A DNA stretch of 64,000 nt from Pelomyxa schiedti (lineage: Eukaryota > Protista > Evosea): positions 1 through 64,000 of the forward strand of contig JAHLWZ010000016.1 in assembly GCA_020536535.1 (NCBI GenBank). Direction: 5' to 3'. The position numbers and the translations under genes were made by a program. The notes beneath the pieces are model-generated. The model worked only from the letters and a program-made list of their open reading frames with translations, was not told the origin of the DNA and made no database searches. Numbering within the stretch: position 1 is the stretch's first letter; each line of letters begins with the position of its first letter. Shown here in pieces: positions 5,391 through 44,300 of this stretch.

Positions 5391-6554
5391 ATGGTACCGT
5401 GCCTATGTCGCATTTTTGCATAGTTACTCACTCATTTTTTCTTTTGTATTGGGTAGCCGCAAGGAGACTATATCGACTTGTTCCGGAAGCGACATGGATA
5501 TCGCTTCGATTATTTCGAAAAGAAGTAACTTCACCTACTCACAATTTCTTAGGCATAAGTGTGGGTGTCTCACCATTATTATTATTTTTTTTCTCCTAGG
5601 CGAAAACAAGAGGCCAAAGCTGGCAAACGAACATCACAGCAGGCCAAGAAACTATGGGGTATGAAAGCTAAGCTCTTCCACCAGAAGAGGTTCAAGGAAA
5701 AGGCTGCCCTAAAGAAAACGTATGGGGCTTCCCTCAGGCTTCCTTCTATGTGCTGAATATCCTTCAGTCTCTCCATGCATGAACAAAAGTCGTCAAAGCA
5801 AGCTGCTCAGCCTGATGGAAAGCCCGGAGCTATTCCACCTTATTTGATGGACAGGTCCCAAGTCAATAGAGCCAAGGTTGGAGATGCATTCTTCTAAGTA
5901 CATGTCTGAGCTGTTGCTACAGGTTCTCAGCAACATGATCAAACAAAAAAGAAAAGAAAAAGCAGGGAAATGGGCCGTACCACTTCCCAAAGTGAGGCCA
6001 ATTTCTGAAGCAGAGATGTTTAAGGTGGTGAAGTCCGGCAAAAGAAAGAGTATGTGTAGTGTACAACACCAAGTACTATGATAAATTACTCATAGTCCAA
6101 CAGAAAACGCATGGAAAAGGATGGTCACAAAAGCCACTTTCGTTGGTGAAGGCTTCACACGAAAACCACCGAAATATGAGAGGTTTATAAGACCTATGGG
6201 CATGCGATTTAAGAAGGCACACGTAACTCATCCAGACTTGAAAAGGTTCGAAGGCACTGTATTTAATAGCACAATTAATCACTGGAGTACAGTACATTCT
6301 GCCTGCCCATTTTGGGTGTGAAGAAGAATCCCCAGTCTCCATTATACACACAACTCGGGGTTATGACCAAGGGTACCATCATCGAGGTAACAACAAACAC
6401 ATCCCTCACCATTTTCAGTAACACCTATATCCAGGTAAATGTAAGTGAACTAGGATTGGTTACTCCAAACGGCAAAGTTGTGTGGGGCAAATACGCCCAG
6501 ATAACAAACAATCCTGAGAACGACGGATGCATAAATGCTGTATTGCTTGTCTAA
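5391..6554 (+). CDS. NSA2: Ribosome biogenesis protein NSA2 (first exon is the ATG only)
   Basis: ATG|gt...ag|[19 protein letters not shown]; [14 protein letters not shown]; [30 protein letters not shown]; [27 protein letters not shown]. Confidence 0.97.
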
Positions 6555-6723
6555 AACGAAACCAAAAACAAAAACAAAAATTTTGTTTTCCCCTGTAATA
6601 GCACGTGATGGTTCCGAGCCAAAAACACCCGACAATTTCCAGACTGCCTTTTTTTTTTTCGTCAAGGAAACTGATCAACGGTTGACCGACTGGAAACTTT
6701 ACAGAAAAAGCAGGAAGTCGAAA

Positions 6724-8139
6724 ATGTCGCGGGCAACGAGCACAGCGACCACTACAGCGACAACAACGACTCAACCGTCGTCAGCGGTAACAACTGCAAC
6801 GCCGGCAGGGCCAGGGAGGCCGTTGCAGGGGGCGCCGGTGCCGTGTTGGTGGGCGTGGCACCATACCGCCATCGCCTTGTGCTCCGCTTTCCATCCCCGC
6901 ATGGTGCCCCCTGCCTATCTGCTTTTTCCCTTTCTCGCCTCGTTCTCACCCCCCCCCCCCCCCCCCCCTTTTTTTTTTGTTTGTTTTTTTTGTTTTTTGT
7001 TTTTTGTCATCTTTCTATTGGTTTGGTGCAGGGAAAGGTCAGTCCTCTGAGACACTTGTCTCAAGATACGATGGCTCGTATTCTGTCATATGCTAAATCG
7101 CGGCAACATGCTTTTGTCAGTTTTGGGGATTGCTATCCCACCGAGGTCTTACACTTACACAATAATAAGCAATTAGCTCGAATTTATAACCATGCAGGTG
7201 TGGAACATAAATTCTGGGAGGTTGGTATGCAGGCTTCCATACGCCAGCTTGATGGTTAACTCTGGCAACTCTGACGCGCTCTACGGAGTTATTGGCAAGA
7301 CAGTGTGGTCCTGGGACTCATCGAAAGGGGGCCCAACCCGATCTTTCTCCTGCACAGGCAAGGAGCTGCTGTACTGTGCGCATTCTTGTGCTGCTCAGAC
7401 TCTGCTTGTAGGAGGGACCGAGGGTGTTCTCCGTTTGCATGATTCAGTTACGGGCGGCCTCATATCTACCGCAACTTCGTCGAAGCACTCCAAGTTTATC
7501 AAATGCCTAGCCTCTCCCGCACCGGGTGTGGCTGTAAGTGGGAGCGCTGATTGTACTGTACAAGTCTGGGCGCTTCCCAGAGGCGCTCCATCACCAGGCT
7601 CTACTACGTCTGCCGCAGCTGCCCCAGCATCCTCAGCAGCTGTCAGTGCGACATCAACCGCCTCAAAATCCTCTACCACAACCACTGGGGGTGACAACTC
7701 GCCCAGACCCGTTGTAAGTGCCAGAATGCCTGGCGGCGTAACGGCAATGGCCTGCTTGAGTGCTTCCAATTTGCTTTGTGGTGACAGCACTGGAGCTATG
7801 TCAATCCTCGACGTCGAAACAGGGAAGTCTATCCACGACATCAAAGTCCACACTGATGCCATTGCGTCGGTCGACAGTGCTTGGAACATTCTGGCATCGG
7901 GATCATTTGACCTGACTGCCAAGCTGTGGGATGCCAGGACAGGTATCTGCACAGAAACCATCATCGATGGCAAAGGTTGGGTGCGAGGAACATGCCTGGC
8001 ACCAGAGACAGGCAGATTTGTCTGTGCCAACGCTCTTGGTGTACTGACTATATTTGATTTGAGGAAGCTATCCGCCCCGCTGCACTCGGTGAAGATGTCT
8101 ACACGCAAAGGTGTGTTCTCAATGAGCCTTGGGTGGTAG
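6724..8139 (+). CDS. WD40-repeat protein with N-terminal F-box-like motif
   Basis: WD repeats SGSADCTVQVW and LASGSFDLTAKLWD. Spliced N-terminus ALCSAFHPRMGKVSPLRHLSQDTMARILSY. Confidence 0.85.
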
Positions 8140-8251
8140 AATCTTTGATCCGGCATTTTGGCCAAACCATCCCACTTATGTACCACCATTCATTCACTAA
8201 AAGAGGAGAAAGTAACAGGAAAACAAAAAGTTACTATTTCGTGTACACATT

Positions 8252-9651
8252 TTATGGCTTTTCAGCAAGCATATACCAGGCGCCGTTAATGTAACCACAC
8301 TGTTCCACCTTTAGTCCTGCCCTTCCTGCCATTTCCCGCCACTTCGACTCTGTTGTGAATATAAGGCAAGCAATGTTGGCCAGAAGGAAGGTAACAGTTC
8401 CAGGTACCCAAAGTACAAACAAGAACCTGTTGGTTGGTTTTAGTGGATTACTGGATTGAATTGAGCATGAAGTGCAAACCTGCCACCAGGTTTAAGAACT
8501 CTATGTATTTCCCTTAGAGTCGCTAATTTGCGGGTCTCTGGACCAAGGTGATCCATGGCAAAGGTACTTACCCCACAATCAAAGGTGGAGTCCTTAAATA
8601 GTGGTTTCATGTCCGTCATATCACCTTGTAGCATTGTGACCTTAACGGAGAATCAGATACATTACCAATGTCAAACATAGAGAAAAAAATGGGTGGTATA
8701 TACCTTGCTGGAAATTCCTGCTACTTTCATGTTGTGTTCCATCAGACTCCTGCCACCTCCATCTATGTATCCAGCACTGAACAGGTCCACACCAGTTGAA
8801 GTCGCACCATCAGGCCAACACCTGCTAAGTGCCACAGTGGTGCGTCCACTGCCACACCCCAGGTCCAGAATTGCGGGATTCACCCGGTTGCTTTTGAACA
8901 AATCAACAAGTGGTAGTGTACTCCATTCAACATGCTGGAGGAAGGGTAGGTTTTAGCAGCATTCAGGCACAATGAATTATTGTATGTGTGAGTGATATAG
9001 TGGATGGCATTTAGTGACATTATTACCAATAATATAATAAACGCACTTTACTGATCCTCATGTACGAGTTGTTGCCAAAGGCATTTACAGCGAGCATAAG
9101 CAGCACAAAGGCAGCAACCCACAATCCCCAAATCATCTGCACCACAATAGCGCATCCGAAAAGAGCGAGACTCAGCATCCAGCCATAGTTGAGTGCTGCA
9201 AAAGCCCAGCCAAAGTCATACACAGTCCGCGCCGGGCTGCTCCTACTACGCTTGTACGTAACATAGGCCTCACAGCTGCGCACATGCGTATTTTTGGTGA
9301 GACCAGTAAGAAAGTGGTTTTTAGGCGTGATAACACATATGTGTTGGATATGGGAGGGAAAAGGAGGGGAGCAGTACCAAAATGTGGACGCTATTACAAC
9401 AGGGATGGCTCGGATAAATGCAGCTACATACAGACTTTGAACTCCTGGAGCTAACAGCCACAGCCCAGCACTAAGACCAATGAGAACAATACGGAAAACA
9501 AGTGCTGCACCCGTGTGTGGGTTGTTTTGTATTTGTTGTTTGTTTTCTTTTTTGTTTTTTGTTGTTCTTTTGGCTTCGTTGGGAAACGACCTTTTAAGGG
9601 GCGATAGCCGGTTTTTGTAATAATTTCGTGGCGTATGTATGATGCGGTCAT
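8252..9651 (-). CDS. Membrane-anchored class I SAM-dependent methyltransferase
   Basis: Hydrophobic N-terminal segments followed by ILDLGCGSGR, GDMTDMKPLFKDSTFD and LREIHRVLKPGGRF. Confidence 0.85.
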
Positions 9652-38927: not shown

Positions 38928-41697
38928 ATGGACATTGAAGTGGCGTGCAGGCATTGGAATTGTGGGTTGGACCCTTGGCCCGACGTGAAATCAATAAGGA
39001 GTAAATGGCCAACCAAATTTGTTTTCACTGTTGCTGCCACAATTCACTCAAAGTGGTGCTAACAATTTTTCCTTAGGGAGTTGTATGCAGTGTGGCAATA
39101 GGAGAGAAATTTGGTTGTGTGCCACCTGTTGGACTGTGAGTTGCTTGAGGTTAAGCACCCATGTTCTCTGGGAGTTTCAGTCACACTTACTTGTTCTCAA
39201 AAGGACTGATAAAGAGGGGCATGCTAAGGAGCACTTTCGTACAAGTAACCACTCTGTTGCGATTAGGATATCTGATTGCTGTTGTTCTGTTTGGTGTTTC
39301 TCATGCAATGCAACTGTTCAATCTCCGGAGCTGGATTTTTTCCTTCCTAAGTTGCAGAAACTGGAAGCTGGGAGGCAAACACCTCTCCCAGTTGTAGTCG
39401 AGGAAAAATTCCACGAATCCACCATCTGCAACTCAATGTAAGACAGCTTGTGTGGTAACTAAACTAATGTATCTAAGAACATTTCTGTTACAGATCAGAG
39501 CCCATCACGTTTCAAAACTGTCTCCAGTGTAACGTGACTGTGTGCAGTCCCGAGATTATTTCTATTCGATTTGAAAATTGCATTGAAAGCAAATTCAACG
39601 TTGTGAGTCAAGTGGACAATTCCGCACTTATTGTCAAAGCCTGTTCACGGTGTCATATTGAATCACATGCTTTAATATCCCAAATACATCTCGAGGTCGG
39701 CTTCACTATCTTTTATAGGAAAAAACCATCTAATTTCTCTCAGGACTGCTCTTACTTGAGTCTTTCACTTGAAGACCGTATTTGGAGTTCTGAATTCCAC
39801 AGGCACTGTGAAATACATGTTAAACGCTGCCACAAAATTAGAATTCTTCTTCACAGTGAATGGTTCATTCTTCCACTTGATGATCTACCTTCTCACTCGA
39901 CATTCTTACTTGAAGAAGGTCCTCGCTATCTCTACCCCAACTTCTCTTGACATTTTCTTTAAGGCCAGCTCTCCATTGTTGATTGTGCGGCGCACAGGCA
40001 TGCTGAGCCACCAGAGCTATCAGTTGAGAGCATTCCCCACTTTAAATCCTTTATTTAGTTGTCCCAGGTGATTCTCACAAACTACGGGCACAAGTTCATT
40101 TCTGAACTTACCAAGCATAAAGTTTTCACCTCTGGAGGAGTGCAGATCCCCCAAAGCAAATTTCTATCAGGAAGGAGTCAATCACTGTTGACAAAAGTTT
40201 TTCGTAGGGCAAAGACATCATACCTACTCTCTGACCAAGACAGAAGTGAATATGACCAGCTCGTCCAAATGGGAATGATAAGCCTTGTGCACACAAATGC
40301 AATGAGTGTGGATGATATCCGCCTGTTATACAGGCGCAACCCTCTCGAAAACATATCCGGAGTCATCTTTGAATACACCAGTAAATGCGGGTTTCGTTGT
40401 CACCACTGCTACAACAGCAGAGTGGAACCTGTGACAGAACAAAACGTTGATGCCTTGAAGCGAGTTGTGGAGGCACTTATCCCATTGGGGGTCAATACTT
40501 TTTCCTTCATTGGGGGTGAAGTATCCCAGTTTGGAGATGGATGGCTTGATCTGGTGCGTTACATAAAGTCCTTTGAGGACACAAAAGATACTTCCGATAA
40601 GGCTCTCTCCGTGTCTATAACTACAAGTGGTTGGTTTCTTGGAAAGACGAACTTCATTGCCGCCGGGCAAAGATACAACAATGTAACCGACTTCCTGGGT
40701 CATTTACATGACTGCGGTGTGGACTACATACGATTCAGCTTGGATGGACCTGATGCAGCAGCTCATGACACCAATAGGTATACAGTGTTCAAGATATAAA
40801 CACCTTCTGAGAATAAAAATCAGGCAGCACCCAGGTCTGTTCAATCAAATTATCAACAGCTTCGCAGTCGTGAAGGAGGCAGGCCTGAATCCTCGGGTGT
40901 CTGTTCTTGTTCCTCCTGAAGGTCAAACTCCCAAATTCTTGGAGTTCCTGGAACGCCTCTCTGACTTGATTTACACTTTCCCACCCGAAACGCCTGGCTT
41001 CATCAAGGTGGCTAGACTTTCCGCGGATACCTTCAACACCTTGAGCAATTTCATTGACATTGGCTCAGCCGCCAACAGAGCCCAAGCCTCTCCTCCAACT
41101 GACAAAACAACAGCAACACCAACCACACCAACCACACCAAAATCCACCTGCACCTCTGAGACTGAGACCAATCCATCAGATACAAATGCTGATGGCACAA
41201 CAGAAGCATCATCATCAAACAAATCGGAACCCCTCACAATATCAGAGCTGATGGAAAATGACCTGTACTGCAAAGGATACTTCCGGCCCAGCCCCTACAT
41301 CACCATCAAAGCCAACGGAATGCTCTCACTTTGCCGGATCACGACTGCCGGCGAAGGCTACGGCAACATCCACGACAACCGCAGCGGAACCGGCAGCACC
41401 GCCCCGGCAATTGTGGGACTGCTCAATGGGCTTCACCACAGCTTCACGTTCCGGCTTCACGCGGAACACCAGGTCAACTCGTACCTCCCCTACATGGAAC
41501 CTTCCCTGTTTGGCACGGAATTCACGCACCCGTGCGCGGCCCGTGCGATTCTGACCATGATCGCCAGAATGATGCACGAGCACGGCGTGAGTGCCGCAGA
41601 CGCCGAGGAGATTGCACACATCAACCGGCGAGTGGCGTGGCTCACGGGGCACGCGCCAAGCCCAATTCCACCCTCAGAATCTGCTATTTCTTGGTAG
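38928..41697 (+). CDS. zf-UBP zinc finger + radical SAM (PqqE/SPASM-twitch-like) protein
   Basis: CMQCGNRREIWLCATCWTVSCLR.DKEGHAKEHF...HSVAI...VWCFSC; YTSKCGFRCHHCY (40386-40409), FIGGE, ITTSG, FSLDG...HDTNR, C...ITIKANGMLSLC...YGNI. Exons can be joined in frame by GT-AG introns. Confidence 0.75.
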
Positions 41698-41802
41698 CTT
41701 AGACCACTCCAACAACCCTTGCCAGGAGAGAACCACTTTTTCTGCTCAGGTACCATTAAAAACAACATCGCAGTACTAGAGGCAAAAGAAAAAACCAGTT
41801 CG

Positions 41803-43044
41803 ATGAAGGGAGTTGTGGAGGAAATTCTTGTGTGCCGGTCGTGCTGCGACGCCCATCTAACTACGTTGGAGCGCCTCCACGCCCTTGCCAAGGTCGCCAC
41901 CACCAGTAAGAGTAACAAAAACAGAACCCCGGCTCCCACAATTACTTCCACCACCTCCACTTCTTGTTGTACGCCAACACGCCAACAACAAGGGGGAACT
42001 GGAGCCGTGAGAGCTGCCTTTGCCCTCGACGCGGCGGGGCCAGGCCACGAAGGCCAAGAAGCCAACGCGGCGAGGCATCTTCAGCAGCAGCATGATGAAG
42101 GACAAGATCACCAAAACGAGCGGACGACGTCAGGCACCGTGGGCGGTCCTATTTTTACCCCCACTGGTGGCACCAAACCTCACCTTGCCTCCAATTCTGC
42201 TTCCGCTTCTGCTTCTGCTTCTGCTTCCGCTTCTGCTTCTGGCACAGCCTCGCCCTGTGCATTGTCTCGCAATCGCAATTGTGGGTCAGGGACGCCAAGG
42301 CCAGGGTCACAGCCTGTGGCGTCCAAAGTGACTGCGTCCAGGCTGGCCAAAATAGCGCCTTCAACCGCTGCAGCAGCAGTCAATAACAATAGAAATAGAA
42401 GTAGCAATAGCCCACGGCCCAGACCGGGTTCAACGCCGGCCGCCATTTCGTATCATCACTCCCCTGCTTTGCAAAGAATTGGGGGACTGGCCAGTGGCAG
42501 GTTGATTTCTGCACGTAACCCAACCCCACTGAGGACATCGTCTTCGCGGAAACCAACCTCTACAACTAACACACCGAGGAGTGGAACCAGCACCGCCGCA
42601 GCGGATTATGGGAAGACTTGCGCCCAGACACAAGGTGTGACTCCAAAGGGGGCGCAACATAAGCCTATGTATGTGGGACAGAACCCCGTGGTGGCTGTGA
42701 CACAAGTGACCCCTCCACAACCGCAAAGCGAAGTTGAGGTACGGGGAACATTTCAGCCTGTTGTGACTCAAGAAACTTTGGCTGCGCCAAGCAACCCCTC
42801 TGTAGTATCTTCAGCCTCAAACGTGATACTCATGGCAGAATGCCAGAAATCTGCTGAAGGTCCTGTGCATTCCAAGTCTTGTCCTATACTCAACAAAGAA
42901 GGTGTGCCCTTTCCTCTTGCTCATACTACAACAACCCCCCCCCNNNNNNNNNNNNNNNNNNNNNNNNNNNNNNNNNNNNNNNNNNNNNNNNNNNNNNNNN
43001 NNNNNNNNNNNNNNNNNNNNNNNNNNNNNNNNNNNNNNNNNNNC

Positions 43045-43075
<31 letters not shown>

Positions 43076-44300
43076 AAAAAAACCCACAAATTGATGTCAT
43101 GCAGACAATCGCTCTTCAATCTCGTTGGTAACACTCCTGTACTAAGGGCGAATTGAATAATGGTCCACAGGCACCAATGCAAAAAGTATCAGTCTTATCC
43201 TCTCCCCAAGACAACCTCAATGCTGAAGCCAATCCGCAAGCACACTATAGTTCCGCCTTTTTGAAATATCTGTGCTATAAAGGGACTCAAAAGTCTACTG
43301 TAGGTTGAGTCTGTATCAACTCCGCATTCAGCGTTAACAGTTTGAACATAGAACACTCGCCTAGCAGTATGCTACCGAAATATAAAAAGAATCTAGAAGT
43401 GCGGTTAGCCACAGCAAAGAGACTTGTAGAAACTCTCAATGGTTCAAAAGTAATTGCACTGAGAGAAATTGACCAACCATCCAGGAGAACATTTTACCAC
43501 CAATTCGGAGAACCTCTTGCTGTTGTATGAAATCAAACAACAACTGGCCTGTGCCATCAAATTATACCAGGCAGTAAGAGTAAAAGTACCACAAGACCCA
43601 AAACCCATTGTGCAGCATGAAAGTGAGGCTATCAATTACACACAAGGCATCCTTTCATTCCTTGCCAAAAGTGGGAAAAAAGTCAATTCAACTGTAGTAC
43701 CGGGTGCAGTCAACACAAATGAATCCAATGCATACAATTCATGGGGATGGTGGATTCCAAGGCACATTGGCGATTCCCCTGGTAACGCATCCTTTTCTTA
43801 TATTTTTTTTTTCGTTTAATTGGATTTTAGATACACTATTTCTTCCAACAAGACTGTGTGGTCTAAATAGCATCCGGATCTCGTATAGTAATCCCAAGGC
43901 ACTCTTTCCCTTTTATCAAGTGAAAACCCTTACATCCTCAAGGAAATTACTCTTCTCTACAAAATGTTGCATGAATACCAATGTACTTCACTTTCTCTAC
44001 ACTTGGAAAAGCAAATAGAACTCCTATTTACAAAAGAAGGCCTTTTTGACTCTTCCGCATTTGATTGGTATTTCCTCTCCCTGAACTACGACTCCCAACA
44101 ACATGTTTCCTCATATTATCAAAAGGGGTGCAGCAGAAATTGTCAAACACTGCAAAGTGGCACACAACCTGCTGTGTAATAATACTGTTGATGGTTGTTG
44201 TTGCTCCAAGGGCACCAATTTTGCATAATTCCCTTTGGAATCAAAAGATTTCGTTCTATTGGATAGAATCGGGCCACCTGAGGTGTCAAACGTAGTTTGA
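41803..44300 (+). CDS. Hypothetical protein with S/T/P/R-rich N-terminus, interrupted by an assembly gap
   Basis: Long ORF 41719-43131 and short downstream exons with GT-AG-like breaks. No recognisable domain. Confidence 0.5.
42944..43043. other. Scaffold gap (100 N) flanked by poly-C
   Basis: Run of N. Confidence 1.

Follow-up and report, generated by a model that had tools for sequence, protein, structure and literature searches.

The systems closest to the locus described here are the zf-UBP finger of HDAC6 and the peptide-modifying radical S-adenosylmethionine (radical-SAM) enzymes EpeE/YydG, SkfB and SuiB, which are the nearest solved relatives of its radical-SAM domain. In HDAC6, the pocket of the finger includes R1155, W1182 and Y1184; Y1184 hydrogen-bonds the carboxylate of the terminal Gly, and an R1155A/Y1184A double mutant loses binding (PMC10424181). 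Both types of domain are found, one behind the other, at positions 38928–41697 of a 64,000-nucleotide stretch of Pelomyxa schiedti DNA (assembly GCA_020536535.1, contig JAHLWZ010000016.1, positions 1–64,000), the whole of which is called the window below. From the sequence, a fusion protein of zf-UBP finger and radical-SAM enzyme is likely, though unproven. A literature search found no paper describing a zf-UBP joined to a radical-SAM enzyme, and the presence of a radical-SAM enzyme and a ubiquitin-system domain in one protein is probably a previously undescribed combination.

Gene model and transcription

A single open frame can be followed on the + strand from ATG 38928 to TAG 41695–41697 by hand phase arithmetic on the sequence. 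It is built from seven exons of 73, 73, 234, 425, 59, 710 and 874 nucleotides (nt), together 2448 nt, or 815 codons plus the TAG. Profile searches, folds and trees used the exons one by one; the continuity of the frame across exons is arithmetic. Introns 1–3 occupy 39001–39076, 39150–39203 and 39438–39493, and intron 4 occupies 39919–39963. Together with intron 5, all five start with GT and end with AG (lengths 76, 54, 56, 45 and 45 nt). Exons 1 to 5 end in phases 1, 2, 2, 1 and 0, respectively, and exon 6 opens with a whole codon, GTG at 40068. An earlier note on this DNA had given these five introns, with the borders and preserved frame found here, and had correctly placed an in-frame stop at 40056–40058 within intron 5; it missed a sixth intron, 40778–40823. 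The features of the locus are as follows.

Exon 1, 38928..39000, + strand: start ATG and N-terminal Cys-x-His (ACRHW) of the zf-UBP; GTAAAT follows
Exon 2, 39077..39149, + strand: first half of the zf-UBP (SCMQCG..IWLCATC..VSCL); Pfam zf-UBP positions 1–21, E 0.005
Exon 3, 39204..39437, + strand: second half of the zf-UBP and linker; Pfam zf-UBP positions 25–62, E 7.8e-9, 36.1 bits
Exon 4, 39494..39918, + strand: Cys/His-rich middle part of 141 codons without Met; open frame of 152 codons
Exon 5, 39964..40022, + strand: 59-nt linker exon (GQLSIVDCAAHRHAEPPELS), placed by hand phase check
Intron 5, 40023..40067, + strand: 45 nt, GTTGAG..CCCAG, containing the in-frame TAG 40056–40058; the fusion rests on this junction
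Exon 6, 40068..40777, + strand: N-terminal domain of the bacterial family (possibly RRE-like) and first half of the radical-SAM barrel
Intron 6, 40778..40823, + strand: 46 nt, GT..AG, skipped in an RNA contig of run X3
Exon 7, 40824..41697, + strand: second half of the barrel, twitch-like auxiliary-cluster region, helical C-terminus and stop TAG

The coding frame ranks first of three by codon usage in every exon, a weak signal. The exon 5 frame is preceded immediately by a TAA (39960–39962) and contains no ATG, so exon 5 codes only if it is spliced to exon 4. Exon 4 gave no Pfam match even at E 10, no NCBIfam match and no paralogue in the P. schiedti genome, and its single-sequence fold model is unusable (predicted local distance difference test, pLDDT, 37). 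By language-model features, exon 4 (39495–39917) resembles the CAP_C/TBCC beta-helix (Atlas, 0.92, 190–195 shared features), which is a lead only.

Three P. schiedti single-cell RNA-seq runs gave contigs over 40672–41771 and 41908–42279 only, and the contig of run X3 skips exactly 40778–40823. The enzyme part is transcribed and its intron 6, which splits the Arg codon of the HDTNR motif, is spliced. The genome of this species has 7.43 introns per gene, 98.4% of them GT-AG (PMC8887013). In the RNA, template-switch-oligo letters stand directly before 41908, likely the 5' end of the next + strand transcript; the position lies in a Ser/Thr/Pro-rich open reading frame (ORF) at 41719–43131, which includes a run of N. 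Single contigs of low depth differ from the genome at 41195 (G>A) and 42014 (C>T), which may reflect an allele, an error or editing.

The finger, the enzyme and their relatives

The zf-UBP finger predicted by the earlier note, which had called for a profile scan, scored above the Pfam cut-off (PF02148; 36.1 bits in exon 3 vs 22.7). Intron 2 cuts the profile cleanly, and a six-frame scan of the whole genome, reading through exons 2 and 3, gave 49.7 bits over 39082–39330. Aligned with HDAC6, the zinc ligands are distributed over three exons: ACRHW in exon 1, CMQC and CATC..C in exon 2, and H..H..H and C..C in exon 3. The Cys-x-His of exon 1 occupies the place of CPH in HDAC6 and of DCPH in a second eukaryotic locus described below (contig L007), and the finger is therefore complete. 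The equivalent of HDAC6 R1155 is kept, its Arg codon being formed across the exon 2/3 join (exon 2 ends in AG), as are both Trp residues (W1143 and W1182 equivalents). Binding of a Gly-Gly tail by this finger is plausible but uncertain. Another P. schiedti zf-UBP (G000:C939:33516-33751) is likewise interrupted by an intron, at about the same point of the profile (~24); the intron site that the window has in common with L007 is thus not peculiar to this gene.

The enzyme was recognized by Pfam Radical_SAM (PF04055) in exon 6, with 42.3 bits against a cut-off of 29.5 (E 1.1e-10). Its motifs, all of which the earlier note had read correctly, are CGFRCHHC at 40386–40409, the CX3CX2C of the [4Fe-4S]/SAM site, GGE at 40512–40520 (FIGGEV), FSLDG..HDTNR and YCKG...IKANGMLSLC...GNI. 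Exon 7 contributes auxiliary-region Cys codons at 41269, 41332 and 41533, and a low-complexity insert at ~41071–41230. Across the family, the invariant Cys residues are the CX3CX2C triad and C318, C339 and C397, numbered as in P0001, a Chloroflexota member; three invariant auxiliary Cys point to a twitch-like site, not a seven-Cys SPASM. Accordingly, SPASM (PF13186) had no match in the window, exon 7 included, and stayed below threshold in bacterial relatives (14–15.5 bits vs 21.5, E 0.02–0.06). Identity with PqqE was rejected (TIGR02109, 12.6 bits vs a cut-off of 381), and NCBIfam returned weak generic radical-SAM matches only (MoaA, 2e-6). Of the earlier description as 'PqqE/SPASM-like', the radical-SAM assignment and the twitch-like region thus stood, and the PqqE and SPASM labels fell. 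By its sequence, the enzyme is a twitch-type member of an uncharacterised bacterial radical-SAM family of ~440 residues, with cluster binding predicted. Of the 52 residues invariant in the family, the window copy keeps 50, or 51 if the Arg whose codon intron 6 divides is included, and the laterally acquired enzyme appears intact.

A structure model of bacterial P0001 (pLDDT 85.8) has a small alpha/beta N-terminal domain at residues 1–77. Compared with solved structures, the model gave Z scores of 18.3 for EpeE/YydG, 17.1 for SkfB, 16.5 for BlsE, 16.4 for viperins, 16.3 for SuiB and 16.0 for anSME. The best scores lie within ~2 units of each other, so the fold puts the family in the twitch/SPASM group without pointing to one substrate. 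Residues 78–405 of the model can be aligned with SkfB, BtrN and MoaA. The alignments with SkfB and SuiB begin at residues 9–16, and because they reach into the N-terminal domain, the modelled fold seems to lean towards peptide modifiers.

A search with exon 7 recovered 93 bacterial relatives at 29–42% identity, most of ~440 amino acids (aa), from Chloroflexota and other bacteria; a genome scan added relatives in Polyangium, Minicystis, Spirochaetota, Holophagales and Woesearchaeota. PF02148 is on none of the annotated relatives among the matches listed. P. schiedti itself has two further intron-bearing copies, G000:C857:38798-39325 (L005, 53% identical) and G000:C1109:12091-12699 (L006, 44% identical), which NCBI records as 'radical SAM protein' (P0094 and P0095, 670 and 522 aa). 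In both paralogues, the N-terminal motif is followed by a long insert of low complexity. In a tree of the N-terminal half, the four eukaryotic copies (window, C857, C1109 and L007) form one clade with a Shimodaira–Hasegawa-like approximate likelihood-ratio test (SH-aLRT) value of 99, and their sister is a metagenome protein of bacterial length. The tree of the C-terminal half recovers the same clade with weaker support and places it inside the bacterial family. A prokaryotic origin of the enzyme is supported by this nesting, as the earlier note had proposed; the likely anaerobic host that it foresaw is P. schiedti, an anaerobic amoeba.

The surroundings of the bacterial homologues are variable and often mobile- or defence-like (REase-ARP, GIY-YIG, HNH, integrase, type IV secretion system). 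At L011 (4995–5978) and in the flanks of L008 and L009, they include REase-ARP/PDDEXK 23 nt upstream, GIY-YIG, HNH/ScoMcrA, integrase fragments and TraG/VirB4-like genes. Such surroundings hint at a conflict-system role. Clusters of small ORFs seen at bacterial loci proved to overlap the ends of the enzyme gene itself. Fusions to other domains occur in some relatives: SIR2 in two cases, a bacterial SH3 and an N-terminal class I methyltransferase (P0106, P0163, P0104, P0120), the last in a 726-aa protein that is probably eukaryotic. The enzyme family seems prone to gaining partner domains.

The domain order recurs in a divergent eukaryote; the earlier note had suggested a search for the same architecture in other protists. 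L007 is a 210-kb eukaryotic metagenome contig (ENA ERZ21831265, ctg81421l), in which region 6542–8669 carries an HDAC6-type zf-UBP (E 8.8e-12) and, ~260 nt downstream in the same orientation, the same enzyme. The match of the L007 finger to HDAC6 spans 38 residues (E 3e-10), and its intron falls after C.R, as in the window; the Arg, the two Trp and the equivalents of Y1184 and Y1189 are all present in it, and only the Y1156 equivalent is changed, to His. No ATG occurs in the first ~70 codons of the L007 enzyme ORF, which introns of 37 and 82 nt would join in frame to the finger exons. The Thg1C of this organism, compared in two pieces, shows 71% and 41% identity to that of P. schiedti, which indicates that the organism is not close to P. 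schiedti. A grouping of window and L007 was not rejected by the approximately unbiased (AU) test (p 0.80). Pattern and alignment scans of JGI metagenomes for further eukaryotic cases returned bacterial loci only, and one candidate, L062, was rejected as bacterial. P0096 traces to the same ENA sample as L007.

One gene or two

The case for a fusion is made at the start of exon 6. Bacterial members of the family begin MK[VI]xL[TS]N.G, and exon 6, which immediately follows a pyrimidine run and AG, opens with VILTNYGHK and so corresponds to the bacterial protein from residue 3 onwards. An in-frame TAG lies 4 codons 5' of this point and no in-frame ATG follows before codon 68, in keeping with the stretch of ~65 codons without ATG described in the earlier note; translation from codon 68 would leave out the greater part of the conserved N-terminal domain. 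In-frame ATGs are confined to exons 1 and 2, with none in exons 3, 4 and 5. The enzyme exon thus has no usable ATG of its own, which argues for an upstream coding exon, as had been claimed from the sequence. We infer that the bacterial start codon was replaced by an intron acceptor. In public models, each paralogue is interrupted by an intron at the intron 5 site or no more than 1 nt from it, after a leader exon of 8–12 residues that ends just before V[IA]LTN (MTSSSDAEEHYQ before VILTN, and MDRTTHFS before VALTN).

A number of observations weigh against a ubiquitin-directed fusion. In the finger, alignment to HDAC6 places Phe at Y1184, Thr at Y1189 and Thr at Y1156, and the first two changes may weaken Gly-Gly binding. 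Among ORFs of at least 80 aa at 31 bacterial loci there is no conserved neighbour, and the small ORFs, compared at 30 of these loci, include no precursor peptide or conserved member. The trees do not show the two finger-linked genes to be sisters, the C-terminal tree pairing the window with C857 and the N-terminal tree being a polytomy. No public protein record for the window locus was found at 160–1172 aa, and the genome scan found no zf-UBP on the C857 or C1109 contigs. The remaining points bear also on a rival account, possible though clearly the less probable one, of two tandem genes, a zf-UBP protein and a stand-alone enzyme with a short leader exon in or just after exon 4. The first gene would then encode ~280 residues from exons 1–4, with intron 4 retained, and end at TGA 39948–39950; the linkage of the two would reflect neighbourhood, an alternative promoter or nothing. 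Both paralogues are stand-alone in public models, with the short leader exons just described, and comparable leaders are available in the window, where ATG 39817 or 39880 reaches 40068 in frame through a donor at 39919 (149-nt intron) or 39985 (83-nt intron). In L007, ATG 6961 is in frame with the linker exon and could start a separate enzyme gene. RNA contigs cover none of 38928–40671, so that the join lies outside their coverage and the exon 4–5–6 connection is in no transcript. However, the window leaders lie in the +1 frame within the 152-codon open exon 4, which, having no Met, must be part of the finger gene; a same-strand overlap of the two genes would result, and the stop of the first would fall after the leader ATGs of the second. 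The tight head-to-tail order is also repeated in the divergent L007, and the leader matches could be due to chance.

A decaying or mis-assembled 5' end, with a start at Met 68, no translation, or a 1-nt error hiding a leader ATG at 40000 (MLSHQSYQ), is very unlikely. The assembly was built from amplified single cells (PMC8887013), and one added G at the acceptor would put ATG 40000 in frame. What follows this ATG, TAT CA/GT, resembles the end of the C857 leader, TAC CA/GT, and CAGGCATG is common to both; however, the shared 8-mer is not significant, the same score being reached in 236 of 2000 shuffles. Homology of exon 5 to the C857 leader exon was accordingly rejected (12% of shuffles match). 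Against decay, the gene is transcribed and spliced, and the 50 of 52 invariant residues, including those of the N-terminal domain, are kept at only about 50% identity to the nearest paralogue, which indicates long purifying selection. Bacterial contamination or endosymbiont DNA as the source of the radical-SAM part is vanishingly improbable: the family is otherwise bacterial and Pelomyxa carries prokaryotic symbionts (PMC10579272), but the spliceosomal intron 40778–40823 inside the enzyme is removed in RNA, which excludes it. In addition, there are three intron-bearing paralogues on long eukaryotic contigs, and GC content over the gene (44–50% in two 2-kb windows) is within the 40–51% of the whole window. 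The locus is thus a P. schiedti gene with an intact-looking acquired enzyme, and, having weighed these accounts, we lean modestly towards its translation as one 815-residue fusion from ATG 38928.

Comparing window positions 39992–40024, in and just past exon 5, with L005 3652–3700 (- strand), we note the out-of-frame ATG 40000 with CAGGC before it, as at the start of the C857 leader exon; this may be the relic of a former start exon, though the resemblance is the non-significant one given above.

Proposed role and comparison with known systems

In the 815-residue fusion, the enzyme would be preceded by an HDAC6-type zf-UBP finger and ~160 linker residues, both encoded by the five upstream exons. 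The finger could dock on a free C-terminal tail, whether the Gly-Gly end of ubiquitin, that of a ubiquitin-like protein or a different tail, and docking would bring the radical-SAM domain beside a protein or peptide substrate, from which a 5'-deoxyadenosyl radical would abstract a hydrogen. Alternatively, the finger may serve localisation or regulation rather than substrate choice. Ubiquitin-directed modification is speculation, if reasonable speculation. The full scenario, unlikely as a whole, is that the fused enzyme captures ubiquitin, a ubiquitin-like or another Gly-Gly-ended protein and modifies it by radical chemistry (e.g. epimerisation or a C-C/C-S cross-link), having arisen in anaerobic amoebae from a bacterial gene and been kept in two lineages.

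If the fusion is real, it would offer a handle on an uncharacterised bacterial radical-SAM family, as a eukaryotic reader domain hints at the kind of substrate, and would be a clear example of a laterally acquired gene that entered eukaryotic signalling through the capture of exons where its start codon was lost. If the ubiquitin reading also holds, the reaction would be a hitherto unseen post-translational modification in the ubiquitin system. If there are two separate genes, an ordinary lateral transfer with three paralogues remains.

Among known systems, viperin and its prokaryotic counterpart pVip share with this family a radical-SAM enzyme found in eukaryotes and prokaryotes and a structural Z of ~16, and differ in that viperin has no auxiliary cluster domain. 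Identity with them was rejected: the PADLOC match to pVip covers the generic cluster-binding third only (first ~87 positions; profile positions 4–68), and the NCBIfam viperin models score 13–20 bits against 180–450. Assignment to a known defence system fell with it, as PADLOC matches the generic part of pVip alone.

EpeE/YydG (8AI6), SkfB (6EFN) and SuiB (5V1S) are the structures that the family model matches best, and SkfB is also matched in sequence (2.4e-10). Identity to these enzymes is, however, only 12–17%, and the family has only three conserved auxiliary Cys. Its bacterial genes have no adjoining precursor peptide or conserved neighbour, and BlsE, viperins and anSME score nearly as high.

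The bacterial ~440-residue family (e.g. P0001 of Chloroflexota, and members in Polyangium, Minicystis and Woesearchaeota) is 35–50% identical over the full length and shares the N-terminal domain, core and C-terminal domain; its members differ in being single genes with their own ATG, none with a zf-UBP. The window finger resembles the HDAC6/USP-type ZnF-UBP in its profile score above cut-off, its zinc ligands and the equivalents of W1143, R1155 and W1182. It differs from HDAC6 by a 2-residue insert (CC) ahead of the WCF motif, and from the HDAC6/USP type as a whole in what it would be joined to: a radical-SAM enzyme, and not a deacetylase, USP or RING.

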